In this document: one piece after another, positions 1-58,662 of the stretch
Numbering within the stretch: the stretch's first letter is position 1
Layout: each line of letters opens with the position of its first letter
Source: Podarcis liolepis
Taxonomy: Eukaryota
Reading direction: 5' to 3' (one strand)
Assembly: GCA_965112155.1 (NCBI GenBank)
Contig: OZ218108.1
Length of the DNA stretch: 64,000 nucleotides
Notes under the pieces: model-generated
Databases searched by the model: none
What the model saw: the letters and a program-made list of their open reading frames with translations, nothing else
Told to the model about the DNA's origin: nothing
Translations under genes and position numbers: made by a program

Positions 1-195
1 CCTTATCAACATGGTTGTGGTTTTTAATTTATTTACCTCTAGCGATAAACCACAAGTAAGATAATGGGTTTTTCCTGTTTTTTTGTTTTGTCACATTGCA
101 AATTTAATTAATTGATGCACTTTATTGTGTGCTTAGTGTAATAACTTATTATTAGTCTGTTGCAAATGCCCCTTCTTAAAATCAGGAGATGGCAA

Positions 196-486
196 GAGTC
201 CTGCTGGATCAGGCCAGTGGCCCTCCTTCTCCAGCATCCTGTTCTTACAGGGACTGACCAGATGCCTGGGAGAAGCTCAGAAGGAGGAGCTGAGCTCCAG
301 AGCCCTCTTCTCCTCTCCTGCAGTTTCCAGCAACTGGGGCTCAGAAGCACCTCTGCCTGCGACCGTGGAGGCAGAGCAGAGCCGCCATGGCTAGTGGACT
401 TTGATAGCCCTTCTTCCCCATGAATTTGTCTAATCCTCTCTTAATCTAAGTTGGTGGACATCATTGCTTTCTGAGGGATAAACTCC
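196..486 (-). mobile_element. CR1-type LINE 3' end fragment (degraded)
   Basis: cctgctggatcaggccagtggcc...ccagcatcctgttct...gaatttgtctaatcctct resembles a common squamate CR1 3' terminus; shorter related copies near 34625 and 59600; bounds approximate. Confidence 0.6.
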
Positions 487-878
487 GTTGAGTGACTTGT
501 AACATTTTAGGTAGCTGCTCATTGACATTTTTAATTTGCAATTCCTGTTCTTAACAGAAGCTTATAAATAACACACCATATATCACTTTATAGTATACAT
601 AACACTGGTATACATGTTTCATGCTCTCCTACCCTTACAACCCTACTATTTAGCTGCAATAATAGTAAAAGAGAGATTCCTAACATTTCGTGTTAATAAA
701 TGGGTTCGTTATGATATTTTAATATGCTTTCTGCATGTGATTCACGATATCATTTGGTCTTTATGAAATGCTCCTTTGCAAGTTTTGTGTTTAAAGCTCT
801 TTTTTCACCCCTCCTGCTCTTTCCTTTTTTTCTTTGCCCTTCTGTCCTTCTTATATTTTCCCCCTCCACACGTATCAG

Positions 879-3800
879 ACCAGGATCTTTAGTTAGCAAT
901 GGGAAAGTCAGGATCATTCCATTTGATTACGAAGTTGGCCAAGAACAGGAAGAGTGTGAAGAGAACTATGAGGAATTAGGCAAACAGTTAATAGAAGATT
1001 TTTTAGAAAAAAGTCACAGGACTAGAAGTTCACAGGGACGAAGGAGCCCGAGGCTCTCAAAAAGGGAGAACTTTGGCCATCCAGAAAGAGCAAGACACTC
1101 ACGGAAGGCTTGCCCAGAATCAGGACATCCCGATGTTCCTTGCTATCCAGAGGAATATGACACAATAGACAGGAGAAGAAAGAAGAAGCTGAGATATAAC
1201 AATTTTGAAGAATGCGAGCGAACTGTACTGCAAAGCAGTGGTAACCGGAGATTTTCATCAGGCAGCATTAAAGCAAGAACTGAACATAACCTATATCCTG
1301 ATTATGATGAAACTGAGAAATGGGGCAGCAGCCCCATTGAAAGTGAAGAGCAGTTACCGGAATATCCAGTTCTGCGTCCATACAAGAATGGCCTTCTAGT
1401 CAAGAGTGGCAAGTTGTCCGTTAACCAACGCGCAAAGCATGACTCAGGATCAGTCCATTTTGATGGTGAAAATGAGATCCATTCAGAACAGCCAGCTCAC
1501 TCTTTTGTGCCATTGGGTGCCCTTAAAGAGTTTGGCAGCTGTTCATCCAGCATACTCCTGTACTCCCCAGTTTCAGATGATGATGATGATGAAATGGAAG
1601 AAATAGCAATACTTTCCCAAGCATGGCGTGAATCCAGTGTGCGCCATGTTGGAGACCTTACTGACGCCCATACTGGAAGTGCCATATCCCTGTTACCAAG
1701 GGACAAAAACTCACATAGGATGAGAGGAGGAAAGCACGGCTTTCTTAAGCAAGACTTGACCCTCTCTCCTGTTGAAGAGCCAACGGAAGAATACGTGGAC
1801 ACAATGGATGAACTGCAGTGCTTAGTTGAAACTGTGTCTGAATACTTAGCTGAAAAAGAGGAGGAGATTAGCAAATTTGAAACCCTTCCTGCGAGCAAAA
1901 ACGCAAGCGATGGTCCCAAACTGGCCGGTGCTGATAAGCTGGTGGAGGAAAGTGCCTCTTTGGAACAGGCAAAGCCAGCCGCTTCTGCCGCAGAGGAGAG
2001 CGAGGGCAGCAAAGGCATAACAGAGGCACTGCCAGACTTGTCTGGGGTGAAGAACACGGTCAGCTCCTTATTTAGTTCTTTCACCGAAAAAGTGGGCTCA
2101 GGAACAAAGCACTTAACAGCCTCAGTTGAAAAACTTGTATCTCCCACACCAGAGAAACCTGAAGCCCCTGGTCAACCCGAGGGAGGCATCACAAGTCTGT
2201 TTTCAAGTAAGCCTAAGTCTGAGGGTGCCTCTCCAGAACTGAAAGCAGAAAGCAAATCGGATGCCAGGTTGCCCACGGCAACTTCCCCTTCTGTGACCCA
2301 GAGTAGCCGTGAGCGAGAAGCCGGTGATGCCAAGGCCAGCATCCCAGAAAAGACGGCGGGAGACAACAAGGCTCCTCCAAGTGTCCAGGATGCTTCAGCA
2401 AACGCTGCTCCGCCCCCTTCTCTGGACCCCAGCTCAGTCGTGAACTCCGTCTTAGGCATCTTCAACCCTTTGAAAATCTTCTCCGAAAAGGAAGCACCGA
2501 AAAAAGAGACTGCAAAACAGGAGGAGGCTGTGAAGGTGGAAGCCACGCATGCCAGTGCTTCTGAAGCCAAGGCAGGTGGGAAGGAAGCTGAAGGCAACGC
2601 GACAAAACCCACCAACGTTGCGCCTCCCGAAATGAGCAAGAGCGAGGCAGAAGCGAGCGCAAGCAGCGGCCCCGTCTCCTCCATCTTTGGCAAGCTGTCG
2701 AGCTCCGTTAGTTCTTTTAGCTTGAAAGCCAGTTTTGAGAGTCTGGCTGTTCCCAAGCAGCCAAGTGGGCCGCAGAAGGCTTTTGATGCGCTGCCGCAGG
2801 CCACAAGTCAGCCAGATAAAGTTGTTAAAGAACACCCAGACATGCCAAGAAATCCACAACCTGCAGGGAAAGTGCCAGAAAACAAGCCAAGTGAAGCCAA
2901 GAAGGAGACTGGTACCGCTCCGCCGTTGGAGCAGGGGGAACCATCTGAGAGCTTTTTCAGCCCACTTAAGAAATCCTTCAGCCAGTTGCTGCTCCCTTCT
3001 TCTGCTACCGAAACTGTGCCAAAGGAGCCACCACCGGGCTTGGGGAAAAGTCACCGTTCTGAAGATGATGTCAGGAAAACAAGCTCCGCAAGCAGCGAAC
3101 CCAACTTCCCTTTCACCGGTAAGCTCCAGATTCCCTTTTTGAGCGGTTTTGGCTTTTCAGACAAACCACCGCAGGACAACAAAGAGAAGCCAGGAATTTT
3201 CACTTCATTCTTGAAAGCTGCTTCTGTGGAAAACCTGACAGCTTCAAAAGATCAAACTGCCCCACCAAGTTTTAGTGGAAAGCCACCAAATGCTGAAGAG
3301 GGTCACAAAAGCAGCAACGTGGAAGCTGCCAAAATGGACTCGTCAAAGTCTCAGGCAGTTCCCGAGGCACCGCAGAGAAAAGAGGAGCCGACGAGGAAGA
3401 AAGAAACCGGTAAAGAAGATGGTCTGGGTGCACCAAAACATGGAGATAAAGACCAGGGTGCCTCAGACACTTCAAAAATTGCCCACATGGATCATGATCC
3501 CAAACGCATGGGTGCTCTGGACCACAAGGATTCCAAATGCAGGGGGGAGCTGGCAGCCCCCACAAAAGAACCTGACTTAAATACCACAGCAGGACAGCCA
3601 GTGGTTCCTGGTGGAATCAGAGAGGACCAGGTAATGGATGATACTCCGAAGAAGGCCCCACAGCCAGGGCAGGGGTTGCTCTCGGGCCTCTTCCGGCGGG
3701 CGTCTTCAGACCACATAACCCACACGGAAGAGTCAAATGCTAAAAATGAAACGGACAGCCAGAAGAGCAGATCAGCCGGCTTACTTTCTGGATTATTTAG

Positions 3801-6800
3801 GTTTGCTTCAAGTGAAAACCTGACCGAAAGTATGCCAGATAAGGCAAAATCAGGCTCTCTGGGCATAATGAAGTTTTTTGAGAGGAGCGAAGAGACTAGT
3901 TCTGGTGACAAGTCCATTGGCTCACATGTGACTCCTGGTCCCCAAGAAAGCACTGGGGGGAAACCGGAGACGGGCAGCTTCATAAAGAACTTCATGCAGA
4001 GGCCAAAAGAAAAAGCGGAGGAGGCAGTGACTGAGACTGCGAAGGCGAATGGTCATTTTCCTCACCCAGAACTGAGCAAAAGGGACAACGGACATGGTCC
4101 CGTCCCTTGGAACCCCCCCTCTCAGAATGCTTTAAGCTCACAGTCAAAGATACAAGACTTATCGGGGCAGCCAACTCTTTATAGACAACCTACGGATTCC
4201 AATATTTATCAAGCAGTTCTCAACGAAAGGTCAAATGAATTTCTCAATTCCTCTTTGCTGAATGCTAAATTGTATGGCCACTCAGAGCAGCATCTTGCTC
4301 TTGAGGAAACAAGGAGCCACTCTAGCTTTGACTGGGAATATGATGCAGGAGCATTTTCTCTCAGTGCCCACCAGGTTTCCTTGCCCGTTTACTACGTCTT
4401 GCAGCAGAATTCTGTCCCATTGGCTGAGTTTCTGGAATGGCCAGACTCTAGTGATGCCGTAGTGAACTTGTGTAAAAAAGATGGCAATGCCAATGTCGTG
4501 GATTGGAGGTCAAATGCCAGTTTTGATGCCCTGAGCATGGATTTCAGTGTCATGTCACACGAATCGTTTGATCAGTTAGACTTACAAGATTTAGGTCTAG
4601 AAGAAACGGAAATGTGGGCAACGCATTCTCTGAATGGAAACCTTCCTCCATTTGATGACTGCAGCTATATTTTGGAAGAGATGCCCATGGACTTGAGCTA
4701 TTCGTCGGCATGTGATGGCAATATGTGGACCTTAATTGATCAGGAGTCCTTGAGCTTGGAGGGCAGTTTTGTCTATTCATCTTATAGCCATGAGTACCAG
4801 GACTGGCTGGTGCTGCTTGAGAAGGGCGTGTGGTGGCCGTCGGAAGATGGCGATTGTGGATATTACATGTACAGGGATGGTCAGTTTGTTTATTCCCTGC
4901 TCACCGACCCCACTGGGCAGTATGTCTACATTTGCACTCCTGACACTTACACCTACCCAGACTACTGGGATTATAATTATCCGCAGAGCATTTTGCAGAG
5001 CACTGTCTTGGAAGATGACATGATTGCCGTTTGCGGTTTCAAAGTGCCTCTTGGTAATGAAGACGAGTTATTCTGGTTTGCTGAAGAGGAGCAATTGGAT
5101 AATTACTCTGTAAACAAACCACTTGATTTGTCTGTAGCTCTGCAGAGAAGTGATCAACTTATGAACATGAATTTAGAGACCTTTTCGCAGATGTTTGAGG
5201 AGTCCATTTATTACCAGAGAGAGCAGCCTTTAGACTTTTCAGGATACAAACTTCAAAAACTCAAAGTAGACTTTAGGCCTGAGAATGACATGGAGTGGCA
5301 CTCAGAAGAGCCTCCCCTGACCCTTGACCTTAGAGTTCACTCCAGGGTGGCTTCCAGTGGGAGGCTAAAAGATGATGCTCTACCCAAACATCCGGACAGG
5401 ACCCCTGCTGTGACAGTTTCCGAAAGTGGACAGTCAAGACGGTTTGGTTTCCATATATTCCAGTCTTCTGCTAAGCCTGAGCCTTCATCGGCATCTCAGA
5501 CTGTCACAGAAGTCAAAACCACTGAAGAAGATAAAAAGCCACCTCTGAATAAAGTCGCATCTTTATTCTCTGCTTTGGGTGGCCTGATGGGTAAGGGTAT
5601 GGAAGCGCATGAGACAGTGGAAGACACGGCTGTGAAGAAAGGAGAACCGGTGGTGTTGGGACACAAAAACGATGCTCTTCCAGCTTCGCCACCCAGGAAA
5701 ACAGGAGAGGATATGCAAAACCAGCAGCACACTGAGCGTGAACAAGAGAGAAAAGAGAGAGGCAGATTAGTTAAGTCTGTTAGGGATGAAAAGCCAGTGA
5801 TTTCTCAGAAAAAGCCTCAGCTGGTGAGGTCTTCCTCTCAGCTAAGCCAGGGTCCCTTGGACAGCAAGACCAGTCAGCTGGATAAGAGTGTTAAGCCTGC
5901 TCCCCTCCCAAGTCAACAAAAACCCAAAGTGGGCGAGGATGAACCCAAGAAAACCCAGCCAGCCCCCAGCCAAGCGCCCACGGAGGCCGAGGGCACATTG
6001 TTTAAAAGTGCTCTCAAGATTCTCAGCCTGGGAGAAGACTCCTCCACACCTGCAGCCGCCAATAAAAGTCAAGGCCCCGGGTTCTTTGATTTCTTTAAAA
6101 CGCAGGTCAACAAAGCCCCACAGCCACCACCAGCACCCCAACCAAATCTGACGAAAAATGAAGCCGAGAAGAAAATGCCTCAGGAGAAAGTGGAGCCCCC
6201 AGGCATTTCATCATTCTTTGGTTCCATAGGGGATCTTTTCAAAGTTGATGCAGCCCCTGCCCCACCAAGTGCCGCTGCTCCACCAAAGAGTGGAACCCAC
6301 ACCTCCCTGAAACCGAATGACAACGCGGAGCAGCGGAGCAGAGAGCCAAGTAAGAGCAGCACTCCTGCCCCTCGAATCCCCGTGGAGCAGGCTCGTGGGG
6401 AAGCTGCCCAGAAGCCCACAGTCCCTAAGGAAGAACAGCATGGGAAAGTAGGCAAGGAAGCTGCTCCAGTGAAGAAGGAGGACATCCCCACCGCAGAGAA
6501 TGCGGAACCCAAGCCTCCCATGCAGGCAGGCCCTCGAATGGACCAAGCAAATCGCTCTCCAGGGCAGCATGGCCACGGACCAGCTGTTGCAGCGGGACCG
6601 CAAGGCCATGCAGGAGCCATGCCTGGTAAAACTCAGCCAGGAAAAGCCAGCCAGCCAGCCAGGGATTCTGGGTTTAGCCTCCCTTTTGGCTTGTCGCAGG
6701 CAGCACCTTCGAAGCCTCCGCAGGGACCGCAGCCGGCTGGCAAGAGCATCTTCTCCTCCTTCTTCGGTGCCCCAGAGAAAGCCCCTGCCCCAGCTCCAGC

Positions 6801-9695
6801 AGCTCCTAATGCCAAGCCCCCGGAAGCAGAGGGTCTGTTCAAGATGCCTTCTTTCTTTTCCGGAGGGCCCACCGCAAAGAAGAACGTGCCTCAGAGCAGC
6901 TCCAGCTTCAGCTTTTTCAACCTGCCCTCCTTCCTGGATGACAAGCCACCGGCAGCTGCTCCTGACAAGGGGAATATTGCAAAGCCACCTCAGCAGCAGG
7001 CAAGCAACCTGGGAAGGCCGCCTCAGCAGCAAGCAGGCGCAAAGCCATCTATGAAGCAGTGTGTTTCTGTTGACTCTGGCATTGGACTTGCCAGACAGCA
7101 GGGCTTGAAGGATAAAGAGGCAGCGGCTGGTGTTATAGAAGCAGTACTTGGAAAGCAAGAGGCTATTGGCCCGGAGCACAAGGCAAGTGAGCTAAAAACT
7201 CCTGCGGCTGAGCATGCTGCGGCAAGTGCTTCAGAAGCGAAAAATGAGGTAGAGATACCTTTTGTGGCCAGTAAACCTCCTGATGATGGTACAGATAGGG
7301 AAGACCACTCAGTCTGTCCTGATCCTGGCTCTCAGGTCCCTACGCTGCAGGAAGACGTTCCACCTTCCCTTCCGGAGATTCCACAACCAGAGGAGCAGCT
7401 GCAAGACAAGGCAGAAAAGAGTGATGGTATTGTGGTGTCCTCTGAGAAGGAATTTGTTCCTTCAGGTGGGAACGAGACTTCTGAAAAGGCAGAGCCCGGT
7501 CCAGTTTGTGATGAGACTCCTGTGGCTCTTGAGCCATCTCCTGCTCCTGGAGACCTTTCACAGGAGGTTGTACCTGAAGAAAAACCAAGCCTCCCTGAAG
7601 TCAAGCCCCCAGAACCCAAGCAACCTGATAGGACCCCAAATACTGCGGGAGAGCAGCAGGCTCAGGGCCAAAGGCCTCTCCCTCAAATGGCAGCAGCAGC
7701 ACCTCACCTGCAGGAGAAACCTAAAGAGCCTGAGGCTGACAAATCAGTTCTAGATTCCTCAGTTGAAATGTTTTCCAGCTTCATGACGAAGATGAAACCA
7801 ACCAAAACATTATCTGGCTTCTTTTCCCAGCCTCAGACTCCAGCAGCTCCTAGTGCCCAAAAGAAGAGCACTTCGTTTTTCGGCCTTTCCTCCCTGCCCA
7901 CTGGGCCTCCTCCAGCATTTACAAGTGATCTCTTTGGCATTTTTAAAGGAGCAACAGACGAGACCCTTTCAAAGCCTGCAGGGAAGACCGCAGGCACTTC
8001 AAAACCCCAGGAAATGAGCTCCAGGGCAAAGGAGGCTGTGGGCCCAGTTCCTGGTAAAGGTCTCGCAAAACAAGATAAAGCCTCTAGGGATGAACTTTTA
8101 GGGACAAATGCCGGCAGCATTTTGAAACAACCGGACCAAACCTCTAGGGCTGAACCTACAGAGAAAGAAGCTAGCAGTGACTTGAAACAAGACGCCCCTT
8201 CTGCTTTAGCAGATGAGAGTTTGGGAAAAGAATGTACAGCAGAATTGGAAGCTGAAAACAGTGGAAGACCTGAACATGGTCTGGAACCCTCCCTTAATGC
8301 TTCAGAAACTTTAGACTCAAGTAGGGATCAGGGCCCTGAAGTGGTACAGCTGGACACAAACTTACTGGCATCTGATGAAGCAGGGAAGACTGCCCCGTGT
8401 AGTCAAGAGGTACATGATGCAGTTGAGACGGTGCTGCTGCAGGAGAAGAGTGAAGTGCCTGTGGAGCCCTTAGAAAATGATGCTGTCCCTGCTGTTGAAG
8501 AGCAACTGAGCCCGGCAGGAGAAACAGACGTTGGCCAAATGGATTTGGACGGTACATGTGAGCTGGAACCCAAGGTTGGTGAGGAAGATGAACACCTGAA
8601 ACTGTCAGAACTGACGGATACTTCACTAACCACTGAAGAAGTAACTACAAAGAATGAGGCAGATGTAGATATTTGCCCACCAGACACGTTTGGGACCCTG
8701 GAGATGGAACCCAAAGCTGCTGCAGATGAGGCCCGTGACTTGCCCCATCAGGATATGGAAAAGGTCCCTGAAATAAAACCTGATCTTCCTCCTGAGCAGA
8801 AAGAGCCTCTAACCGTCAGCGAAGCAGCTCCAGAAGCTGCTCCCTTGAAAAGCAGTTTGGCTGGTAAGAGCAAGCCAGCCAGTGCTCCTGCAGAGGCCAG
8901 CAGCACCAAGCCCATGTTTGAAATTCCAAGCATGCCCACTTTGCCCAAATTTGGCTTCATGTCTTCTGCAGACAGCAGCAAGCCATTTGGCTCCTTCTTC
9001 TCTGCACAGCCGCCTTCAGCAAGCAAGCCTGCGCCTGAGCCAGGCCTCGTGTCCAGCTTCAACAAGTTTTCCTCAAGTCTCTTTGGTGGAGGAAGTGATG
9101 AGAAAGCAGGTAAAGTAGAGGCCACTTCGGGTGCTGTGTTTGGAAAGAAGCTGGACTTCTCATTTCCGTGGCAGAAAGATGCCAAGGAGGCGGTTCTCAA
9201 GAAGGAACCAGATGTGCCAACACCAAAAGCTTCCTCCAAACAGGAGGTGGCCCCAATTGCTTCATCCAAACTGGATTTGAAGGCACCAGAAGCTGTCTCG
9301 AAAGCCGAGGAACAAGCAGTGGATGTGACCGGTGCTGATGGGAGCCCAGACCTCTCTGCCTCTGACCAGCCAGCTGACAGTGCTGCTGATTCAGACCTTT
9401 CTTCTAAGCAGCCCGACAGCAAGAGCAACGAATGCTCTGATGGCCCCACGCCTGACATTCCGGTTGTGCCCAACAAGGAGCTGGAGCTTGAGGTCTCCAG
9501 AGAAACGGAAGATGAGCCAAGCACCATTTCCAGTGAGCCTCCTGGGCTCCCTTTGGAGGAACCAGCAGAAGGCGCCACACAGGTTCAGGATGAAGTAGAG
9601 CAGAAGGAAAGTGTCCCTTGTCCAGAAACGGAAACACTTGCTACTGGACTGCAGCCAGCGGAGCAGAGTAGCCCTGAGCCACTCAGGAAGAAAAG
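879..9695 (+). CDS. UNC13B: Giant alternative coding exon (~2939 codons; reads through to TGA at 9715-9717 if the GC donor is not used)
   Basis: Uninterrupted 2997-codon ORF. ~80-nt AG-free pyrimidine tract (797-876) ending in CAG at 876-878 gives a phase-2 acceptor (AG|A CCA GGA = R-P-G), the same phase as the exon at 11778. Candidate phase-2 donor AAG|GCCAGT at 9695/9696 makes the exon 8817 nt (3n). Coding status is strong; the 3' boundary is uncertain. Confidence 0.8.
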
Positions 9696-10211
9696 GCCAG
9701 TAGCCAAAACAGCATGATAAATGGTGCCAACTTGTGAGCCATTTATAATGCAAGTGCCGTAACGGTAGATGCCTGACCTCTTAGATCAGACTCCTCTAGG
9801 CTGTGTTTGGCATTAGTAGTACCCAGTGGTAGGTAGAGTTGTGAACGCTAGTTGCTAGACTGCCCACCCAGAGCCTCTCCTGCCCTTCTCCTTCTCAACT
9901 TCTGGTTTCCTTTGTTCCAAAAGGCTGCAATGACTCTTCCCCTTTTTCTCTCCGTTTGTGCTGTGTCCTTGTGAGTGAGCTGCTTTGAGTATTAGTTTCA
10001 TTAACCTTCCGTAGCCTAATTGTGTGTGAGAGAAAATGACTTGTACCTCTAGATGACATGGTGGGAGGAAGGAAATCGGGGGCTCTCTTGGTTTGCAGAA
10101 AGCTTAGTTAGACAACATACAAGGCATTCACATTTTAAGATGGGAGAGAGACCCAGATGGCAGCAAAAGCTGTTTCAGTGGTTGCGGTTCAGTCACCTGC
10201 AGCATAACTTT

Positions 10212-10445
10212 TCTACACCCAGAAGGGGATTCCGATGAAACAGCAGATAAAAGCTTTCTGACAGTAGCAGCTGTTGAACAGACTCCCTGGGGAGTTGGTG
10301 GACTCTCCTTTCTTGGAGGTTTCTAAGCAGAGGTTGCCTGGCCATCTGTCATGGATTCTTGAGCTGTGATTCCTGCATTTAGGGGGTTGGGCTGGATGAC
10401 CCCTGGGGGTCCCTTCCAACTCTGCCTTGCTAAGATTCTGTGATT
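10212..10445 (+). mobile_element. CR1 LINE 3' end
   Basis: gtggactctcctttcttggaggtt...gattcctgca...gtcccttccaactct...attctgtgatt: CR1 terminal stem and ATTCTRTG-type tail; related to copies at 29250, 50380 and 53000. Confidence 0.8.
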
Positions 10446-11777
10446 AAAACCTCCTCCCTGCCACCAGGACAAGTTAAACATGGCCGTGGACTATTAAAGG
10501 TACTAATGCCGAAACATCCAGTTCTTGCTGCTCGGAAGCTGTTACTGCCCAGCTAACATGATTCCGTTTTTCTCTACTTTTACCAGCTGTATTCAGCGGC
10601 ATTAGCTGAATGTGCTTTTCTGTCTTAGGCTGCAGGCATCTGGAGCCAATGAGGAGCTCCTTGGTGTCCCCATTAGGTCTCCAAGCAAGCTGATAACTGG
10701 CTTTCTAGTTTACCATATCTCAAAAACATGCTTAATTATTCCATATTGAAGAGAATTGCAGTGATTTCATGTTACAGCTATCAGTATATTAGTGACTTTT
10801 GCTCCCTGTTTACCCCTGTCCGGGGGATGATTGGGGCCAGTGTTCTTGCTGCCCCTCCCTAGTTACAGAACTGCTAGTCACTAAAATCATTGCTAAATCT
10901 GCATTCCTCACCTGCATTCCTCATCTCTAGACAATTGGCCCAGCAGGGATCCTGCTTCAAGCATTTTCCTTTCTGCCCAGCCTGTTTTCCAAGGAATAGA
11001 TGGGATTTTCACAGTGTAGCTGCCTTGGGTCCTCTTGCAGATATCTCTGCCTATGTGGGCTGCCAAAAGCCAGGCGGCACTTCAATAGCGGCCCAGAAGC
11101 ATTTGTGCCCCTTCCCTCTTAGAATTCCACAATGGAGAGAGAGAGTGTGGGTGTCTTGTTGAATTAACAGCTCCTGGTGCAGTAACTCCAACCTTATAAT
11201 AATCAGTCACTCCCAAGCAGCAACAGCAATGGGCCCATGTTGTGCTGGAAGACAGGGCTGATTTTTCTAAACGGCAGCTACAACAGGATCCATTCTCAGC
11301 TGCTGGAGAAACTTAAGAATGTGTTAATGAAATGGGAGTGAAGATGAAACCCTCATGTCCCAGAATCCACGTGCAGTTGACATGCTAGGGGCAAACGTTG
11401 TTGTGAGAAGGTGTTGAGCTTAGCAGTTTAGAGGTTCAATGTGCACAAAACTTTTGCTGCCATTCTTAATTTTCTTATGGCCTGTGAACAATTTACAGGA
11501 TGCGCAGCAGATGATGCTATCTGTTCCTGATTGATATATCAGTAGGGTCCAGAGGCTTAGGCCCAGCACAAAAATTGCAAACACAAACTTGGAAGTGGCG
11601 GGCGACTGAGAACAGTGGCTGCAATGTGCAAGAGACATTTGCTTGGCTAGAGTTTCCATTTGATGCGTTGGCCTGGTGTAGTTAGGATTTGCGCTCTCTC
11701 TCTCTCTGTGTGCATGCATTGTGCTGTTTCCTGGTTGCCAAGACCTTTTGACTTACTAATGCCTTGCTCTCTCACAG

Positions 11778-12074
11778 TCCTGCCAGCAGTAGTAAGTTTG
11801 GTTCCTCCTGTAACATCAGTCAGGGAAGCTCTCAGCTGAGTGAGCTGGACCAATATCACGGGAGTGTGCCCTGCTCCGAACACGAGGACGAGCTCGCAGA
11901 AGGGGTGCCTGCTGCTGCTCCTCCTCACCCGACAGAGGGCCCTGCGCCATCTAGCGAGCAGCATGAGCCCCAGGAAGTGCACAGGGAAGGAGAGGGGAAG
12001 GTGAAAGAGCATGCCACACCTCAACTACCTCCTGAAGCAGACGAGCCCAAAGAAGCCACGAAGACACCGGGCAG
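11778..12074 (+). CDS. UNC13B: Exon: ubMunc13-2-type N-terminal linker (S)[27 protein letters not shown]...KTPG
   Basis: ctcacag| acceptor, AG|gtaggt donor; 297 nt, phase 2-2; matches recalled UNC13[29 protein letters not shown]. Confidence 0.92.
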
Positions 12075-12527
12075 GTAGGTGGTGCACATTGGCCATGGAT
12101 TCCTGGGAGTTGAACTTGAGGTCATTTTTCTGGTTGATCTTGGGAGAGACAAACAGGATATGGGTGTAGTGCCATAGCTGGTTTTGAGTAGTCCACTGGT
12201 GTCTAGGGTCAGAAAGGGTAGGGCAAACATCATTAAATAAATCTAATTAATCCTCCCCTTCATCATCCTCATCATTTTACACCCATCCAGTGACTAATGT
12301 GGTGCATTCCTTACAGGGTTCTCTACCACAGTCCCTGTTGGCCACACTTTCTGTTCTTTCCATGCCATTCTCTGTGTTTTGCTGGCCATCCCAGGTCTCT
12401 TGGGGCCAACTGTTCTCAGCGTTTGTTCCCACCATTACAATAAAAGCTTCTTTTCATGTGTTGAGTTTCATGAGACTGCTCTTGAGTTTCCAGCACTCAT
12501 TTTTTCCTTGTTTTTCTTTTTTGCAAG

Positions 12528-12618
12528 TCACCTTGACGAAAATGAACTTCTCCTTCTTCCCGCTGCAAGAGCCCGCTGGATCCGAGCCATTAATAAAGTG
12601 CGGCTTCAATTTGAAGAG
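12528..12618 (+). CDS. UNC13B: Exon: calmodulin-binding helix (ARARWIRAINKVRLQFEE)
   Basis: Long T-rich tract + AAG acceptor, GAG|gtaggg donor; 91 nt, phase 2-0; Munc13-1/ubMunc13-2 CaM motif with anchor Trp. Confidence 0.9.
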
Positions 12619-13997
12619 GTAGGGCCCGCGAAATGTCCCTTCCCCCATCCTTCCACCTGTGTCTGTGCTTGTAAACCTTGCCATGACTGTTGTCTGAAGG
12701 TTCCTTTGCTTGTCTAAGGGAGACACCGTTCTGGGGCAACTGCACAAATGGTGCATGTTCCTCTCTGGTACCAACAACTTGCTGAAGTTGACTGTGGTGG
12801 GCTTAATTTGTTGACCCCACGGCAGAGGGGTGCAGAACTTGTGCCCCACCAGATTTTGTTGGACTCTCTCCTCAGCCCCAACAGCCAACAGGGCTGGGAT
12901 TGGGGCGAAGTTGGAGCTCAGCGACATCTGGGGGCACCAAGTTGGCTACCTGTGTTGTGTAGAAGAACCAGAATTATTTATGGAAGTGTTGCGTTGACAT
13001 CACTGTTCCTGTGTCTGTAGTTTGTCTTCTGAGGCCCTTCTCTATGTTCCCTTTCCCCAAAAGGTTTGGAGGGTGACAACACAAGAAAGGGCCTTTTTTG
13101 TCGTGCCCCCCCGTTTGTGGAATGCTCTCTCCAGATGCTTTCCCAACCCGTTGTGGGTGTGTGGGAGAGGAGACCCTTCCATGAACTACTGTGCTGCTCC
13201 TGGCGGCCTCCCAAGAGCACCCAGAAGCCGAGTGTTGTCTGAACAGGCCGAAGCAGAGAGTGGCAGCAGGTTCCCTCTCTGCCCCGTGTTGTTGTTGTCT
13301 TGTGCCATTTGGATGCTGCCCTGGCCAGCGGAAGGCCATTGATGTGCCCCGAATCAAAATAGGCTCTCATGTTTGCAACCTTGCCGTTTTAGATGGATCA
13401 GAATTTACACAATGTCACCGGGCTCTTCTGCGAGTGGGCTTAGCATTGCAACTGTGTTGTTGAGGTATCACAAAAGGGTCCTTGGCAGCAATGATATTTT
13501 TCATGGAAAGGGGAAATCTGAGCTAAATGTGGGGAAAATACGGGGTAGCAGTTTTAGGGGTTTCTTTAAAACAAGAGCATGCAAAAGGAGCCCCTATCTA
13601 ACACTGATGTCAGGCTTTCTTAGCAGTTTCTCATGCAGGGCAGAAACTGTGTTTTGCTACACAGAGTATCAAAACACTTTTTTAATTCTTAAGCAAGTCA
13701 GAAGCCTGTTGAGTTGAATTAAAAGATCCTGACGGGTGTAAGAAATGTGAGATATTTACAAAAAGCCGTCAACCCAAGAGCTTTAACAGAACAACCCGGC
13801 GAGTTTGTCTGTCTTCTGAAAAATGCTGCTTTGAATCATTTAGTAAATTGTTTTGAAAAGTAAAACTCTCAAGAGCACTGGAGGCTTCTGCGCACAAAGA
13901 GAATTGGTGGTGTGTGAACGACAAGCGGCTCTTGATGGCTGCAAGCAGACCCCTCGTGCCTTCAAGTGCCTCCCTCCATCTGCTTTCTTGTGGGGCA

Positions 13998-14197
13998 NNN
14001 NNNNNNNNNNNNNNNNNNNNNNNNNNNNNNNNNNNNNNNNNNNNNNNNNNNNNNNNNNNNNNNNNNNNNNNNNNNNNNNNNNNNNNNNNNNNNNNNNNNN
14101 NNNNNNNNNNNNNNNNNNNNNNNNNNNNNNNNNNNNNNNNNNNNNNNNNNNNNNNNNNNNNNNNNNNNNNNNNNNNNNNNNNNNNNNNNNNNNNNNN
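13998..14197. other. Assembly gap (200 N)
   Basis: Run of exactly 200 N; a round number suggests a scaffolding placeholder of unknown true size. Confidence 0.98.
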
Positions 14198-15012
14198 AGG
14201 TCCAAATCAGTTTGCCACCGAGGGAAAGGAGGCATTGGGCATTGGGCCTGTAGGGCAGCAGACTCTTCTGCTCTCCTGCTGCTGCCCCAATGGGCAGAGG
14301 TGATGGAAATGGTAGCCCAACAGCAGTTGGGGGGCCACAGGTCAGAATCAGATCATTTTGAAGCCCAAACCTGTCTAAGGCTCTCATCCCAAATCCACAG
14401 ATAATCTTCTCCCCCATCTGAGAGAGGGGTCTGGAATGGGAAGGGCTTTCTCCTCCTCCTCGCTGGCTCTCCTGATCAGCAGATGCTTTTCTCTTTTAAA
14501 ATGTAGATTACAGGAGTCTGAAGAGCTTTCCTGTTGTGGCTCTTTGGAGTTCAAAGAGTGTGCTGCCATGATGGCCTGATGAATTCTGACACCTTCCCCA
14601 TTGCTGCTTGCCATGCCTCTTTGGAGGAAAGAAGAGAACAAAACCTGATTTAATTTGTACATGGGATGGATTTGAGCAAGGCGCCCTTGATTTCAGAACT
14701 GTCAGGGGCGCCTGTGCTGTGTAACCTGAACTGACGGGAATAATTCACAGATTTAAAGCCGCACAAAAGCCGCTCGGCATTCAGTCACGTCAAGGTTATT
14801 CCTTGTAGCGTGGAGCATTTCTTGCCTTGTTGAACTGATGTGTTTTTAGGTGTTGGTTTCTCCAGGCCAAGGCAAGATCCTGCTTTGCCCGCGTGATTCT
14901 TAAGTCTGCAGGAGGCCTCACCCGGGTCCCTCAAGAGCATCTGGCTGACAGATTATAACATGTGGCGTGCCATCACTGCTTGCCCTCATTCATTTCCCCC
15001 TTTGCTTTCTAG

Positions 15013-15091
15013 GCCAGCCGGGGGTCTCTATGGCATCGACAGCATGCCTGACCTGCGCAAGAAGAAGCCCACCCCACTCGTCAGTGACCTG
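15013..15091 (+). CDS. UNC13B: Exon: [26 protein letters not shown]
   Basis: tttctag| acceptor, CTG|gtgaga donor; 79 nt, phase 2-0; conserved Munc13 motif. Confidence 0.95.
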
Positions 15092-17724: not shown

Positions 17725-17799
17725 TCGCTGGTCCAGTCCCGGAAGGCCGGAATTACCTCAGCCATGGCCACCCGAACTTCTCTCAAGGACGAGGAGCTG
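17725..17799 (+). CDS. UNC13B: Exon: SLVQSRKAGITSAMATRTSLKDEEL
   Basis: tttcccag| acceptor, CTG|gtaagg donor; 75 nt, phase 0-0. Confidence 0.96.
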
Positions 17800-18663: not shown

Positions 18664-18936
<273 letters not shown>

Positions 18937-45484: not shown

Positions 45485-46744
45485 CTGGGATTTTGTCCTC
45501 CCTCTGCTGCAGTTCTGCTGTGAAGCGGAGCTCTTCCTTAGGAGCGCAAGTGGGACTCTTCCATCTCCTGTGTTTTGGTGGGCTAAGCCTCTTCCCTCTG
45601 GGCTCCTAATAATGTCTGGCCTGTGTGTGCTTTTTGTCTCACCCCCTTGCTCATCTCTTAAGTTCTGGATAGAATGAGCACCCTCAAGGCATCACGTGGT
45701 AAGAGCCTTCCTTGTGGTGACCCTTCTGAATGTTCGGCTAAAGACCTTTCCTCTCCATAGTGAGAATAATAGCACATAGCCTCCCCCCCCACCCCCCCCT
45801 GTGGTCTTCCATGTTAACAGATGTAGAACGTGAAGGGAGAGATCCAGAGGGTGGCAACAGGAGAACGGGGCCTTTTCTGCGGTGGCTCCCCACTCTCTCC
45901 AGGGAGGCTTACCCGTTACCTATCTTTAGATGCCAGGCAAAAACACCCCTCTTCTTGCAGAAACAATCTGTAGCCCTTTAAACTGGGGGGTGGGTATGCT
46001 TTCGGTTTGTCTTGTGCTTCTATTTTGCAAACAGCCCTGTCATCCTCGAACGAAGGGCAGCGTAGAAATTTAAATAATAATCATAAAGACGTGAAGGGTC
46101 CTTCTGAGCATCTCTCCCTAGAGGAGCGATTCCTGGTGAGGATGGGAGCCAACTGGAGGCCTCATATAGAGTGCCTTCTCTTTCTCTGGGCGGGAGCCCT
46201 CTCGCCTTGCTCCGCTTCTGACATGGATAGACAGGAGGACTGGCAGCTTTTTGGAGTTGGGAGTCAGGGAGGGCTGTGTGAACATGGGTGGTTGGTTCAC
46301 TCCTGCCTTTTCTCTGTCCAAAGCCCCACCTATATTTCGCATCCGCATGGTCCTCTTCCAGGGCGGTAAGAGCCTTTTTTATTTCTCCCTGACTTTATTC
46401 TAGTTTAGCAGGTTCCCACCCCCCTCCCAGGCTGTGCATAGATCACAAACCCCTAAGTGATGCTTAGTTTGCAGAGCAGACACGTCTGCCTGAGCCCCTT
46501 TCCATGGCAGGCCGGTGGCGGCAGGAAGCAGCTTGTGTGTGTGTCGCTCCCCCCTGCAGAAAACCCCGCCTGCTGCTCCTCTGCTCTGCGTGCGCTTTCC
46601 CTCCCAGCTTCTTCTCAGGTGCCAGGCACTGTAGGGCCTTCTCCTGGCCCACCCTCCTTCCAGAGAGCCTCACTGGGAGAGCTCCACTGCTTGGCTGTGT
46701 CCATGCGAAGCTGTCCTGGTTTTGTGTTTTCATTTCCAATCACA

Positions 46745-46955
46745 ATTCAAAGCGTTGGAGCTGACCTTTAAAGCCCTAAACGGCTTCAGTCCAGTATACC
46801 TGAAGGAGCATCTCCACCCCCATCGTTCAGCCCGGACACTGAGGTCCAGCTCCGAGGGCCTTCTGGCAGTTCCCTCACTGCAAGAAGCAAGGTTACAGGG
46901 AACCAGGCAGAGGGCCTTCTCGGTGGTGGCGCCCGCCCTGTGGAACGCCCTCCCA
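46745..46955 (+). mobile_element. L2-type LINE fragment (same family as 30928-31290)
   Basis: Direct similarity to the 30935-31100 segment; peptide FKALELTFKALNGFSPVYLKEHLHPH...RAFSVVAPALWNALP. Confidence 0.85.
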
Positions 46956-47242
46956 TTGGCTCTGTTTGCCCTGGATATTATCAAGTGGGGCTCAGTGGCA
47001 TTTACCAGCAATTTTAAAGGAATTAGGCAGCCCAAGGATAGAAAAGTTTCCGCCAGGATAGTTGGCGTTTTTTGCGTTGAGACAAGTGTCATGGAAACAT
47101 TCTGGAAGCGAAGGTGCCAAAAGCTGAAGGCCCTGCGTTGGCTTCGAAGTCTCGTCTCTCCGCGTCCTGAAGTCTTAAGATGGGCTGGGAGAGCCAGACA
47201 GCAAGAGGCCTGAGCCCAGGAAAAACCCACAGGGAGCCTCGA

Positions 47243-50378: not shown

Positions 50379-50895
50379 CATAGAGTAATGGAATCATAGA
50401 ATTGGGAGGTACCCCTGGGGTCATCTAGTCCAACCCCTGCACTGCAGGAATCTCAGCTAAAGAATCCCTACCCAGTGGCCAGCCAAGCTCTGCTTTAAAA
50501 CCTCCAAGAAAGGAGGGAGTCCGTTCCCCTGTCGAGCAGCTCTTACTGTTAGAAAGTTCTTCCTGATGTTTAGTTGGAATCTCCTTTCTTGTAACTTGAA
50601 GCCATGGGTTTGAGTCCTGCCCTCCAGGGCAGGAGAAAACAAGCATCCTCCATCCTCCATGTGGCAGCCCGTGAGATATTTGAAGGCGGCTATCATATCT
50701 CCTCTCAGTCTCCTCTTTTGCAGGCTAAGCATCCCCAGCTCCTTCAACCGTTCCTCATCAGGCTTGGTTTCCAGACCCTTGATGGTCTTGGTCGCTCTCC
50801 TCTGCAGACCTTCCAGCTTGTCAGCATCCTTCTTAAACTGTGGTGCCCAGAACTGAGCGCAGTATTCCCGGTGGGGTCTGACCAAGGCAGAAGAG
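50379..50895 (-). mobile_element. CR1 LINE 3' portion (ORF2 C-terminus + 3'UTR)
   Basis: Minus-strand peptide ALVRPHREYCAQFWAPQFKKDADKLEGLQRRATKTIKGLE...LSLQKRRLRGDMIAAFKYL; terminal gaatcatagaat. Confidence 0.92.
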
Positions 50896-52990
50896 AGTGA
50901 CTTGCAGTTCTGTTCTCCCCCTTTCTCTTTTAGGTCTCCAGTTTCTCTCTTGAGGGGGGGGGCACAAAGGCCCTTGCCAGCCCCTCCCACTTTTCTCAAA
51001 GGGCTCATCCAGACTTCCTTTTGCACCGCTCAAAAAGGTCCCCCAGTCCTGCTTAAACAAGGCCAGATCAGACCCTTGGTCCATCGAGCTTAGTGATGTT
51101 GATTCTGACTGGCAGCAGCTGCCCAGGCTTTCTGGCTGGAGTCCATCCCAGCCGTGCCTGTAGCTCCTGAGCCTGGAGCCTGGGCCCTTGTTCATGCAGC
51201 CCTTCATGTTTGCAAAGGGGGAGAGACCTGCCCCCCGGGCGCTAGCAGTGTCAGAAGCAGGGCGGATGCATGCAGCCTTGCCGTTCCTTGTGTGCCATCC
51301 TAGGCCATAGAAAGGGGAGGGAGATTGCCAAAGCAGGAGGAAGTTTGCTCAGGTAGCACCCTTGTTGGATGTCTGCCAGCACTTCTTGGCAAAGCTCCAG
51401 AAATTAAATGCAGCAGGGTCTCTTGGCATCTGATTCTGGGGCTGAATTGCTCCTGTAGCTGCGAAGATTCAGGCTGTGGATTAGAGCAGAAGCTGGACCT
51501 GATTGGGGTCCAAAGTACCTCCTGAGTCTCTCGTGGGCTGGAGCAAGGCTTCCTTCTGGCCTCCACCTTCCTGGCCTTGTCCTGAACAAAAGAAGGCTGT
51601 CACGTGTGATATGCTGCCGGGTTAACTGTGGTTCCAGACCTTTCTGGTCTTGTGGAAACTGCCTTTGGAGCCCTCACAGCCACCAGCAATAGCCTCTCAG
51701 CAGAATCCCAGCAGGCTCTGGACCTCTTGGGTGCAGCCAGGCGTTGGCTCCCTGGTCCTGCAAAACAGTGTGAAGAAGGAAGTGTTCCGGAGTGTGAATC
51801 AGACGCCAGGATCGGCAGCCACGCTGTGCCTCTGTGTTTCTGAGCTGTGAAAGGCAGAGTGTTCGGATCACGTAGAAGAGATGGCGCGCGTTCCGTCCTG
51901 CTCATTATTAAGGGCTAATTACCCCCTTCCCCAAGCCAATTCCATGCTTCCTGTTTCTAGCCCACATGAGAATCTCCGCTGCCGGCTTCCACCACACACA
52001 GCCCCGACTCTGAGCCGAGCGCCAAGGATGATTCAGTCGCTTTCAGGAGGATAACAAATCCGCATTTCTGAGCTGTCTCCCTGTGCACCAGACTTGCCTA
52101 GGCCTCCCCACCGAGAGAGCCAGGAGAAGGCGGCACCCACCGAGTGGTTGGATGGCAAGGAACCTGGCTCTGAATTGGCCCAAGTCACCTGCTTTGCCTT
52201 GGCTGTGCGGCGAATTGGGCTGTCAGTCAGCCACCTGCCATCTGCGGATGGAGAACGGATCTCAGTGCTAAGCATTACTAAGCAGAGGGCGCACTGAGAG
52301 CCAGTGTGATCTTGGCTGCCCTCTGGACTGTTGCCATGGCACTTCTCTGCCGCTGGGCCAGGCTCATATTTCAGCCCAGGGGCTGTTTGCAGACACCTCC
52401 TGCCTCTTCCAACGCCCTGCCTTGCCTTGCCTCTTGGCGGCAGCCCTGGCAGGATCCCGGGTCTGATGATGTGCGTTTGCTGAGTCACTTGCTTTCCTAA
52501 TAATCTGTATCGCCATCAAATTTGGACGATATTAACACTTCCCTGCTTTGGCTTTCTCTCCAAATGTCAGCAAACAACTTAAGGCAAACCGGAGCCTCAT
52601 CACTCTTGGAAGCGGGGCTCTGCGTGGGCAAGAGATGGAAAAATAACATGTGATGGCGTCGTTGCCCACGGCTGGCAGACTCCAGTTGGTTCAAAGAGTA
52701 GGGGGAAGGTGTTGGGCAAGAGCGCCCAGTTTCGCTTCCCTTCCTTCCAGCCTCCGTGTTCAAACAGGCAGAGAACTCACTTTGCCTGTGGGACGTCAGA
52801 GCCTTCCTCCCAACCCCGGCGTCTCCTCACTTGCAGCTGCGCATTCCTTTCCTCGGCACCGCAGGGAGTGTTCAGCGCTGCCGAGAAAGGCTGGCCTTGC
52901 TCTTGACTGCCTTAGCAGGTGGCACCAGCCCCTGATAATCTTCTGGCTCAGCAGAGGCCTCCCTAGCCTTAGCAGGAACGGTGGAGGGAG

Positions 52991-53357
52991 TGGGAAGAGA
53001 AGAATGAGAGGTGAAACGAGAGCCATCATCCAGTATCTCAAGGGCTGCCTCCTGGAAGATGGAGCAGCCTTGTTTTCTGCTTCTCCAGAGGGGAGGACAT
53101 GAACCAATGGCCTCAAGTTCCAAGAAGAGATTCCAACTAAACATCAGGAAGAAATTTCTGATGGTGAGAGCTGTTCAGCGGTGGAACAGACTCCCTCGGA
53201 AGGCGATGGGCTCTCTCTCATTGGCGGTTTCCAAACAGAGGTTGGATGGCCACCTGTCAGTCAGGGATTCTTCACTGTGATTCCTGCATTGCTGTGGGTT
53301 TGCCTAGATGTTCCTTGGGCGTCCCTTCCAAGTCTGCAAATCCAGGGCTCTATGATC
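52991..53357 (+). mobile_element. CR1 LINE 3' portion
   Basis: KRRMRGETRAIIQYLKGC, RFQLNIRKKFLMVRAVQRWNRLP and the CR1 3' terminus. Confidence 0.88.
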
Positions 53358-57714: not shown

Positions 57715-58411
57715 GTGAGAGCTTGGAGGAGCCCTTTGGAGCGTGGGGCTCAGCACTGCCTTGCCAGCTGGGCAGGGATTGGATTTTGTGGCTAGCAGGC
57801 CTGCCACGGATTGCATCATGCACCACCAAGAGCCAAAGTGGGGAACTATAATTCCCACCAGGCCCAGCCAGAAGGCTAATAGTCAGAAGGGGGGAGAGAT
57901 GGACAGACATGTTGGCTACTCCTGTCATAGAGAAGGAAGGGAAGATGAGGCCACGGCCTTCGTTGAACACGTTTCCTAACTCTTGAGTTTCTAAAGGCTT
58001 CGTATGGATGTGAAATGGCCTGAAACATTCACACCATCGGTTCGCCATGTGGTGGCCAACTTGAGTGAAGCTGGGTTGCTGAAAGCTGAGATGCAAATGT
58101 GTAAAGACTTTGCTGAATGAGTCTGGTTTGAAAATGTGCTTCTTCCAGCTGCTATAGTTGGCTATGGGTCATCCTTTGCAGCTGAACAGACTGTGTGTGC
58201 CCTTTCTCATTATTCTGGATACTTGCTGGGCCTGTGTGGATACAGCTGTGTTGCCTGATGCCTTCCAAGCCTTAAACACCTGTTGTCCTTAACTGGAGGC
58301 AGGATTTCCCCCCTCCATCACTGATTCAAGCTGTGACATTTTCTGCAACGCTGTGAGAATGCTTGGTCTAACCTTTGCCTGTCTGTCTCTGTCTTTCCCT
58401 TGCTTTCCAAG

Positions 58412-58597
58412 ACTGAGAATGTGGAAGAGAAGGAGAAGGAGAAGGACCAGGATCAAAATCAAAATCAGGATGAGACTCAGAATCAGGATGAGAATCAGGA
58501 ACAGAATCAGGAACAGGAACAGGAACAGGAAAAGGAAAAGGAACAGAATCAGGAACAGAATCAGAATCAGAAGCCTGAACCGAGGAATCCTAAGGCT
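58412..58597 (+). CDS. Candidate cassette exon: Q/E/N/K/D hexamer-repeat insert (TENVEEKEKEKDQDQNQ...EPRNPKA)
   Basis: CTAAC branch point + ~40-nt pyrimidine tract + AAG acceptor in phase 0, open frame, weak donor GCT|gttaga; 186 nt (3n). Confidence 0.4.
58428..58572. repeat. Degenerate hexamer repeat (GAACAG/AATCAG/GAGAAG/GATGAG)
   Basis: About 24 tandem 6-nt units, all variation frame-preserving. Confidence 0.92.
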
Positions 58598-58662
58598 GTT
58601 AGAATCCATATTGCTTACTCTTGGCCTTAAGACACTTCCTCCTTAGCTGTGGCTTCCTAGAT

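Follow-up and report, generated by a model that had tools for sequence, protein, structure and literature searches.

A giant UNC13B coding exon conserved across jawed vertebrates lies between the C2A and calmodulin-site regions in Podarcis liolepis and may end in a GC-donor switch

Munc13 proteins are indispensable to the priming of synaptic vesicles. In a 64,000-nucleotide (nt) stretch of Podarcis liolepis DNA (contig OZ218108.1 of assembly GCA_965112155.1; the whole stretch is referred to as the window, and positions are counted from its first letter), the Munc13-2 gene UNC13B contains an open reading frame of some 8.8 kilobases (kb), which raises the question of whether this region is an exon of the gene and, if so, what it adds to the protein and how it is joined to the remaining exons; the published isoform scheme for UNC13B holds only ubMunc13-2 and bMunc13-2 (PMC5379939). 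The region at 879–9695, hereafter the giant exon, is coding, orthologous across jawed vertebrates, in phase with its neighbours and located between the C2A domain and the calmodulin (CaM) site. On balance, we judge it probable that this is an ancient and alternatively used UNC13B exon with a GC donor that serves as a two-way switch, and that the encoded insert is a tether binding vesicles and CtBP/RIBEYE. An earlier sequence-only reading of the same DNA was supported in part: the coding exon and its position stand and a shared upstream donor is likely, while its cassette inclusion was not confirmed in this lineage.

The analysis of open reading frames (ORFs) in the window identified a plus-strand ORF of 2,997 codons at 724–9717. 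Within it the giant exon begins at 879, directly after an AG acceptor at 877–878, and its reading frame contains no stop until a TGA at 9715–9717, with a TAA immediately behind it. Across the same span, 100 and 224 stops interrupt the other two forward frames, and the openness of this frame is therefore far beyond chance. The acceptor and the exon body are as follows:

797–878, plus strand: AG-free polypyrimidine tract and AG acceptor (797–876, 80 nt without AG, 87% C/T; AG at 877–878)
879–9695, plus strand: giant exon in its cassette form (8,817 nt, that is 1 base + 2,938 codons + 2 bases; about 2,939 codons stop-free)

These values agree with the sequence-only reading, which had described an exon of about 8.8 kb with about 2,940 stop-free codons and an acceptor at 878/879 that follows an approximately 80-nt AG-free pyrimidine tract and shares its phase with the acceptor at 11778. 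As the base at 879 occupies the third codon position and so completes a codon, two bases must come from the preceding exon.

A protein search with the translation of the giant exon matched more than 260 tetrapod proteins. Among these, 'unc-13 homolog B isoform X1' of Zootoca vivipara (3,208 amino acids, aa) displays 91% aa identity to the giant exon, other squamates 38–57%, turtles and birds 43–50% (models of 4,183–4,554 aa; Aquila 4,539 aa), and marsupials and placentals including primates 29–33% (models of 4,250–4,500 aa; Pongo 4,345 aa). The axolotl is also represented. Furthermore, a phmmer search of the module at 4282–5379 against 1.84 billion cluster representatives matched 65 clusters, and all 20 of those whose names were looked up were UNC13B-type or giant-exon models. 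Among them are teleost unc13bb models of 4,892–4,943 aa in Spinachia, 5,754 aa in Megalobrama, approximately 6,040 aa in Nerophis and 4,877 aa in Gadus, together with models from Scleropages, Oreochromis, sturgeon, bowfin, Xenopus and the catshark Scyliorhinus torazame. Orthologues of the exon thus range from squamates, turtles and birds through mammals and amphibians to teleosts and a catshark. A further search used the N-terminal conserved block as query and matched only UNC13B giant-exon fragments from frogs, fish and mammals and yielded no bMunc13-2 or Munc13-3 match; an overlap of the giant exon with the N-terminal coiled coil of bMunc13-2 or Munc13-3 was dropped as a candidate on this result, the conserved helical block of the exon having no detectable similarity to the N-termini of these two proteins. 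Judged from its homologues, the giant exon is as old as the jawed vertebrates and specific to UNC13B.

The suspicion that the exon might be annotated already proved correct, as it is part of predicted UNC13B models in many vertebrates, and its existence is thus not new. The present exon shares its position, junction motif and read-through tail with the predicted models of the UNC13B 'isoform X1' type and differs from them in no essential respect. Public pipelines have labelled it 'uncharacterized protein LOC...', 'microtubule-associated protein futsch-like' or 'mucin-2-like'. In line with the sequence-only reading, which knew of no functional description, searches of the full-text literature (subscription-only papers being outside their scope) found papers on ubMunc13-2 and bMunc13-2 only, and none that describes a giant UNC13B/Munc13-2 exon or isoform or a Munc13-2 with PxDLS motifs.

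The position of the exon was defined by tblastn with Anolis, Varanus and eagle models, which located the canonical exons (the core being 75–100% identical) on the same strand:

11778–12074, plus strand: next canonical exon after the giant exon (297 nt; tblastn; acceptor phase same as that of 879)
12526–12619, plus strand: exon with the calmodulin-binding motif ARARWIRAINKVRLQFEE (tblastn; joint 12074>12526 in three RNA-like runs and in raw reads)
14984–15091 and 17725–17799, plus strand: canonical Munc13 exons (tblastn)
18712–18930, plus strand: C1-domain exon of the priming core (97–99% aa identity to the Anolis, Varanus and eagle models)
after 18930 up to 63355, plus strand: C2B and MUN exons (tblastn)

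The downstream exons thus encode the CaM site, C1, C2B and MUN domains of UNC13B, and ARARWIRAINKVRLQFEE is taken here to be the calmodulin site of ubMunc13-2. The giant exon is located between a C2A-side exon ('...DLDYHER.AI') and the exon that precedes the calmodulin-site exon, and both of its ends are in phase with these flanking exons; tblastn and the gene models therefore uphold the placement between C2A and the CaM-C1-C2B-MUN core given by the sequence-only reading. In the Zootoca model the upstream exon is joined to the giant exon exactly at acceptor 879 ('...SYDLDYHERAAI/RPGSLVSNGKVRIIPF...', that is '...DLDYHERAAI' followed by 'RPGSLVSNGKV'), and the predicted models of Zootoca, Pogona, zebra finch and Crotalus all splice C2A exons to it ('...HERAAI' to 'RPGSL...'). 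RNA from related lizards was examined over window positions 6900–12800 in the form of Logan contigs from three runs (X1, X4 and X5), taken as RNA-like because they carry the spliced joint 12074>12526, and of raw stranded RNA-seq reads from a fourth (X23). The contigs join exon 11778–12074 to the upstream C2A-side exon and onward to 12526, and in those of a related lizard the letters before 11778 (loose end 11775) translate to '...DLDYHERGAI', followed by 'S'. Since '...HERAAI' is joined to 879 in the Zootoca model and '...HERGAI' to 11778 in RNA, one upstream donor appears to serve both acceptors, as had been predicted. In bird and snake models the C2A-side donor is separated from the giant exon by an extra exon of approximately 42 aa (RRYDSIDST...SLDLSD), of which tblastn found no counterpart in window positions 1–878.

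The selective regime of the exon was assessed in the part at 6900–8434 by comparison with the contigs of one related lizard. Of 40 substitutions, 21 are synonymous and 19 non-synonymous, while the same 40 changes placed at random gave 11.6 ± 2.8 synonymous changes and none of 2,000 simulations reached 21; the ratio of non-synonymous to synonymous change (omega) is roughly 0.37 for this part. The sole indel in the compared part of the exon is an insertion of 3 nt at 8025, an in-frame GCA that adds one codon and is present in three runs, while the adjoining intron differs by indels of 1, 1, 2, 3, 6, 1, 2, 3 and 10 nt. Across 24 tetrapods, identity to the window ranges from approximately 0.2 to 0.7 per 60-aa bin with 25 conserved blocks, and the best conserved residues are Phe, Trp and Tyr (0.66–0.71), the least conserved Ala, Thr and His (0.21–0.27). 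The synonymous excess, the in-frame indel and the retention of the ORF in distant species establish that the giant exon is protein-coding and under purifying selection.

The insert encoded by the exon is rich in Ser (11.7%), Pro (10.3%), Glu (9.9%), Ala (8.9%) and Lys (8.0%), a composition typical of disorder, and is thus predicted to be mostly disordered. Pfam identified no family in the insert, a PDB sequence search returned two marginal matches (E 0.015–0.025), both to designed proteins, and the ESM Atlas gave uninformative scores of at most 0.77. A self-comparison of the giant exon identified no significant internal repeats other than two near-identical copies of GLLSGLFR(R/F)ASS (3685–3726 and 3781–3822, 35 aa apart), which resemble a small local duplication of a Phe-motif. 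The conserved content of the insert consists of the following elements, where segments are called ALPS-like (amphipathic lipid packing sensor) if 16 residues hold at least four bulky hydrophobic residues, at least five Ser/Thr/Gly, at most three charged residues and no internal Pro, with a hydrophobic moment of at least 0.35:

1762–1878, plus strand: acidic helical block LSPVEEPTEEYVDTMDELQCLVETVSEYLAEKEEEISKF, the most conserved element (mean identity 0.87 in 24 tetrapods)
2035–2151, plus strand: best conserved ALPS-like Phe-rich segment, VSSLFSSFTEKVGSGTKHL (conservation 0.80–0.85; passes the ALPS-like filter)
1507–1557, 2035–2115, 2671–2730 and 3766–3813, plus strand: ALPS-like segments upstream of the Phe-rich array
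4282–5379, plus strand: Tyr/Trp-rich acidic module (identity 0.5–0.72 per 60-aa bin)
4684–4698, 5119–5133, 5227–5241 and 5314–5331, plus strand: motifs PMDLS, PLDLS, PLDFS and PLTLDL, respectively, within that module
5545–9186, plus strand: array of further conserved Phe-rich short motifs
5545–5619, 6196–6255, 7741–7794, 7909–7959 and 9037–9102, plus strand: ALPS-like segments in the array
6079–6117, 6889–6936, 8926–9009 and 9139–9177, plus strand: other conserved Phe-rich blocks

Over the whole exon there are 51 Phe-motif matches in 26 clusters, as compared to 22 ± 4 matches and 15.5 ± 2.9 clusters in shuffled sequences, and nine ALPS-like segments as compared to 1.7 ± 1.3 in 300 shuffles (maximum 6). 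The residues of PMDLS, PLDLS and PLDFS, which fit the PxDLS type recognised by CtBP/RIBEYE, are invariant in 19 tetrapod sequences, and the same three motifs recur in teleost proteins with their spacing kept (approximately 138–145 and 36 aa).

Piccolino, the ribbon-synapse splice variant of Piccolo, is the closest functional analogue of such a protein. It is a long disordered presynaptic scaffold that binds RIBEYE via multiple PxDLS-like motifs (PMC6539712), and its ALPS peptide binds synaptic vesicle-like liposomes and tethers vesicles (Gierke et al. 2026, PMC13394108); at photoreceptor ribbon synapses, ubMunc13-2 has served to mark the active zone (PMC13394108). When applied to the Piccolino ALPS peptide, the present filter accepts it. 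With three invariant PxD(L/F)S motifs and nine ALPS-like segments, the giant exon resembles Piccolino in motif content, yet it has no sequence homology to Piccolino and lacks zinc fingers and Piccolo-Bassoon homology regions (no Pfam family), and its motifs, unlike those of Piccolino, share a polypeptide with a C2A domain and, optionally, with the MUN priming core. Membership of the Piccolo/Bassoon family was rejected for want of homology (no Pfam family, no meaningful PDB match, and homologues that are all UNC13B); of the 'Piccolo/Bassoon-like' scaffold proposed by the sequence-only reading, the motif analogy to Piccolino (ALPS-like and PxDLS-like) is thus retained while a common ancestry is not. 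By this analogy, the insert would constitute a long, flexible and mostly disordered tether, whose ALPS-like, Phe-rich amphipathic segments are predicted to bind highly curved vesicle membranes and whose Tyr/Trp module may bind CtBP1 or the RIBEYE B-domain through its three PxDLS-type motifs. The tether would be anchored to RIM via C2A and, in the cassette form, also coupled to the MUN priming domain.

The assignment of function calls for caution. The ALPS-like filter is ad hoc and differs from the published predictor, and AlphaFold2 modelling of the Tyr/Trp module from a shallow 19-sequence alignment gave a pLDDT (predicted local distance difference test) of 30.6 and no confident fold. It is possible, though in our estimation doubtful, that the same gene structure operates by another mechanism. 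In that case the Phe-rich motifs would be cohesive 'stickers', or short linear motifs for protein binding, that promote condensation together with endocytic or active-zone proteins, and the PxDLS-type motifs would have a different partner. In keeping with this, the motifs are short and many of them contain Lys or Glu, only nine of the 26 clusters pass the ALPS-like filter, and the insert is Pro/Ser/Glu/Ala/Lys-rich and disordered and yielded no structure or family assignment. However, several segments resemble the liposome-binding Piccolino ALPS peptide (PMC13394108) in composition and hydrophobic moment. The membrane-sensing and sticker modes of the Phe-rich motifs are compatible and may both apply.

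The second element of the favoured explanation is the switch at the 3' end of the exon, where two features overlap:

9696–9701, plus strand: GC donor AAG/GCCAGT (junction 9695/9696; G at +5, T at +6)
9696–9720, plus strand: read-through tail RPVAKTA followed by TGA TAA (end of the coding sequence if the GC donor is unused; stop seven codons past the donor)

A scan of the last 400 nt of the giant exon identified 9695/9696 as the sole frame-compatible donor. A 91-aa peptide spanning the junction (40 codons from the end of the giant exon plus the start of the exon at 11778) was compared locally with orthologous models. Turtle, bird, marsupial, placental and Anolis sagrei models all retain the junction motif, a K followed across the joint by SP(A/T)(G/S)SS(R/K)(Y/F)GSSCN. 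The gene models fall into two classes, namely a cassette class (C2A, insert and CaM-C1-C2B-MUN; 4,250–4,550 aa in tetrapods) and a terminal class (C2A and insert; approximately 3,000–3,270 aa, ending in RPV.. or RLV..), the latter including Zootoca, Pogona, Paroedura, Crotalus, zebra finch and Pseudopipra. Zootoca X1 ends in 'RPVAQTA', and similar tails end Pogona, gecko, turtle, bird (RLVTNEA), marsupial and placental (RPVLN) models; the unspliced-type models of squamates, geckos, turtles, marsupials, placentals and the axolotl carry an Arg-Pro-Val... tail with a stop within 5–10 codons. As Pro is encoded by CCN, these tails imply a C at donor position +2 in squamates, turtles, marsupials, placentals and the axolotl, while the Arg-Leu-Val tails of birds are ambiguous in this respect. 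A conserved GC-AG intron thus follows the giant exon, the GC being read directly in the window and deduced from protein tails in most other tetrapods.

Gene models and sequence together suggest how the exon would be used. Transcripts would enter it by splicing from the ubMunc13-2-type C2A-side exon onto 879, and the weak, conserved GC donor with a stop seven codons later would then act as the switch. Use of the donor would yield a giant Munc13-2 of approximately 4,500 aa, composed of C2A, the 2,939-aa insert and CaM-C1-C2B-MUN-C2C, while a transcript in which the donor is unused would encode a protein of approximately 3,200 aa with C2A and the insert and without the priming core.

The RNA data bear on this switch as follows. 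In X1, X4, X5 and X23, respectively, depth was 213, 321, 51 and 4 on exon 11778–12074, approximately 19, 8–14, approximately 3 and approximately 0.2 on the giant exon, and 20–25, 15, approximately 0.75 and 0 on the intron at 9717–11776, while the short intron at 12075–12525 had no depth. Transcription of the giant exon thus amounts to approximately 3–10% of the canonical level in these samples, and it is in the sense direction, as the mate orientation of its raw reads is the same as that of canonical-exon reads.

Several points weigh against the proposed switch. All giant-exon gene models are database predictions with inconsistent names, and for Zootoca, the nearest relative, there is a terminal model only, which has the same stop and no C1-C2B-MUN. 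The proposed check for reads leaving the exon at 9695 was negative in all four related-lizard runs, no 9695>11778 joint being present in the X1, X4 and X5 contigs or the X23 reads, for which tissues are not given and depth is low. The contigs cross the donor and the stop without being spliced (9160–10322 in X1; 8239–10325 in X4) and reach or pass acceptor 11778; in two runs the depth of the giant exon equals that of the following intron (approximately 20 as against 213 on the canonical exon), and an exon depth above that of the intron is hinted at only by X5 (approximately 3.2 versus 0.75) and by a few raw reads. Additionally, no polyadenylation drop follows the stop, the depth being flat to 11776. 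Giant-exon RNA in two runs is therefore indistinguishable from unspliced precursor, and inclusion in this lineage is unproven, as these data neither prove nor exclude it. Nor does the RNA profile support a short 3' untranslated region that ends soon after 9717. The giant Munc13-2 of approximately 4,500 aa proposed by the sequence-only reading is consequently legitimate in principle, with orthologous predicted proteins of 4,250–4,550 aa, but neither the RNA joint nor the Zootoca model speaks for it here.

These results lead to the possibility that, at least in lacertids, the exon gives rise to a terminal-exon product only, in that the GC donor is unused, transcripts end after 9717 and the protein of approximately 3,200 aa would be a scaffold or competitor that binds RIM, and not a priming factor. 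The common stop codon of Zootoca X1 (3,208 aa) and its equivalents in the other terminal-class species named above, the contigs unspliced across donor and stop, and the conservation of the short tail with its stop all fit such a product. We nonetheless regard it as unlikely, since the GC donor with its G at +5 and T at +6 and the position of the junction are conserved and are used in many cassette models, including that of the squamate Anolis sagrei, and since the flat RNA depth up to 11776 gives no sign of a 3' end. Among poly(A)-like hexamers in the region after the stop there is no AATAAA, and ATTAAA occurs only at 10443, at the 3' edge of a repeat, and at 10493, 48 nt past it. At the repeat in question, an interspersed element at 10249–10445 in the intron after the giant exon, the RNA depth jumps to 76–469, and many different loose ends occur on both sides in all four RNA runs.

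That the ORF is an autonomous gene, nested in an UNC13B intron and equipped with its own promoter and start codon, appears very improbable. Dozens of exon-only models of 2,700–2,950 aa and the stop directly after the exon would suit such a gene. However, the first Met of the giant exon is codon 239, and the 238 codons before it include the conserved blocks EEYDTIDRRRKKKLRY and YPVLRPYKNGLLVKS, which argues against autonomy; the only in-frame ATG upstream (724) lies within the pyrimidine tract and encodes a hydrophobic filler without counterpart in the Zootoca model, and both ends of the exon share the phase of the adjoining UNC13B exons. Some predicted models, such as Patagioenas isoform X2 (3,393 aa) and a model of 2,996 aa, begin inside the giant exon, at points that correspond by homology to window positions approximately 3571 and 4300, and continue into C1-C2B-MUN; such models may reflect internal promoters or an annotation artefact. 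Finally, a retained intron or pseudo-exon with a fortuitous ORF, which would match the equal RNA depth of exon and neighbouring intron in two runs, is in practice refuted by an 8.8-kb ORF kept from sharks to mammals, with a synonymous excess, a sole indel that is in frame and conserved islands centred on aromatic residues.

The explanation based on an alternatively used exon with a two-way GC-donor switch and a tether-like insert may be extended, tentatively and with considerable reserve, to a third form of Munc13-2 in all jawed vertebrates. This protein of approximately 480 kDa would have its C2A domain and MUN core parted by a tether of approximately 2,900 residues with ALPS-like segments and PxDLS motifs, would be governed by the GC-donor/stop switch, and might act in a Piccolino-like manner, for example at ribbon or other high-throughput synapses. 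The giant form would begin with the N-terminus of ubMunc13-2, whose C2A region binds RIM, and would end in the CaM-C1-C2B-MUN core common to the UNC13B isoforms; it would differ by the addition of approximately 2,939 residues between C2A and the CaM site. A comparable gene architecture is that of the 440/480-kDa ankyrins of ANK2/ANK3, in which one very large in-frame exon between canonical exons produces a giant, largely unstructured isoform. The UNC13B exon is likewise a single huge in-frame exon between canonical exons but, unlike those of ANK2/ANK3, it is followed by a conserved GC donor and then a stop, so that it can be the last coding exon.

Some further observations concern the remainder of the locus. 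After exon 12526–12619 the RNA contigs enter an exon whose first 25 letters match nowhere in the window (allowing up to three mismatches), and the sole unread stretch between 12619 and the next recognised exon at 14984 is a run of 200 N at 13998–14197. The introns of the MUN region contain fragments of a CR1-type long interspersed nuclear element (LINE) reverse transcriptase and of a squamate element resembling a short interspersed nuclear element (SINE-like, 'RQRAFSVVAPALWNALP'). Repeat content of this kind and the 91% identity to Zootoca fit a lacertid-like lizard as the source of the window. A low-complexity region lies beyond these fragments:

46722–47213; 50457–51026, minus strand; and 52650–53280, plus strand: CR1-type LINE and SINE-like fragments
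58289–58646: simple-sequence, low-complexity region with repetitive ORFs on both strands (e.g. 'NQNQ...', 'LILIL...')

An 8.8-kb coding exon retained from the earliest jawed vertebrates onward must give rise to protein somewhere. If so, the giant UNC13B protein could bring RIM, vesicles, CtBP/RIBEYE and the SNARE-assembly domain together in a single molecule, and the same exon might also yield a core-less tether. The finding bears on annotation, as the exon is now called futsch-like, mucin-like or an unnamed LOC, and the motifs identified make the tether hypothesis directly testable. If true, this hypothesis would bear on vesicle tethering and the handover of vesicles to release sites, on the mild ribbon-synapse phenotype of Munc13-2 knockouts, and on the reading of UNC13B variants within this 'intron'.

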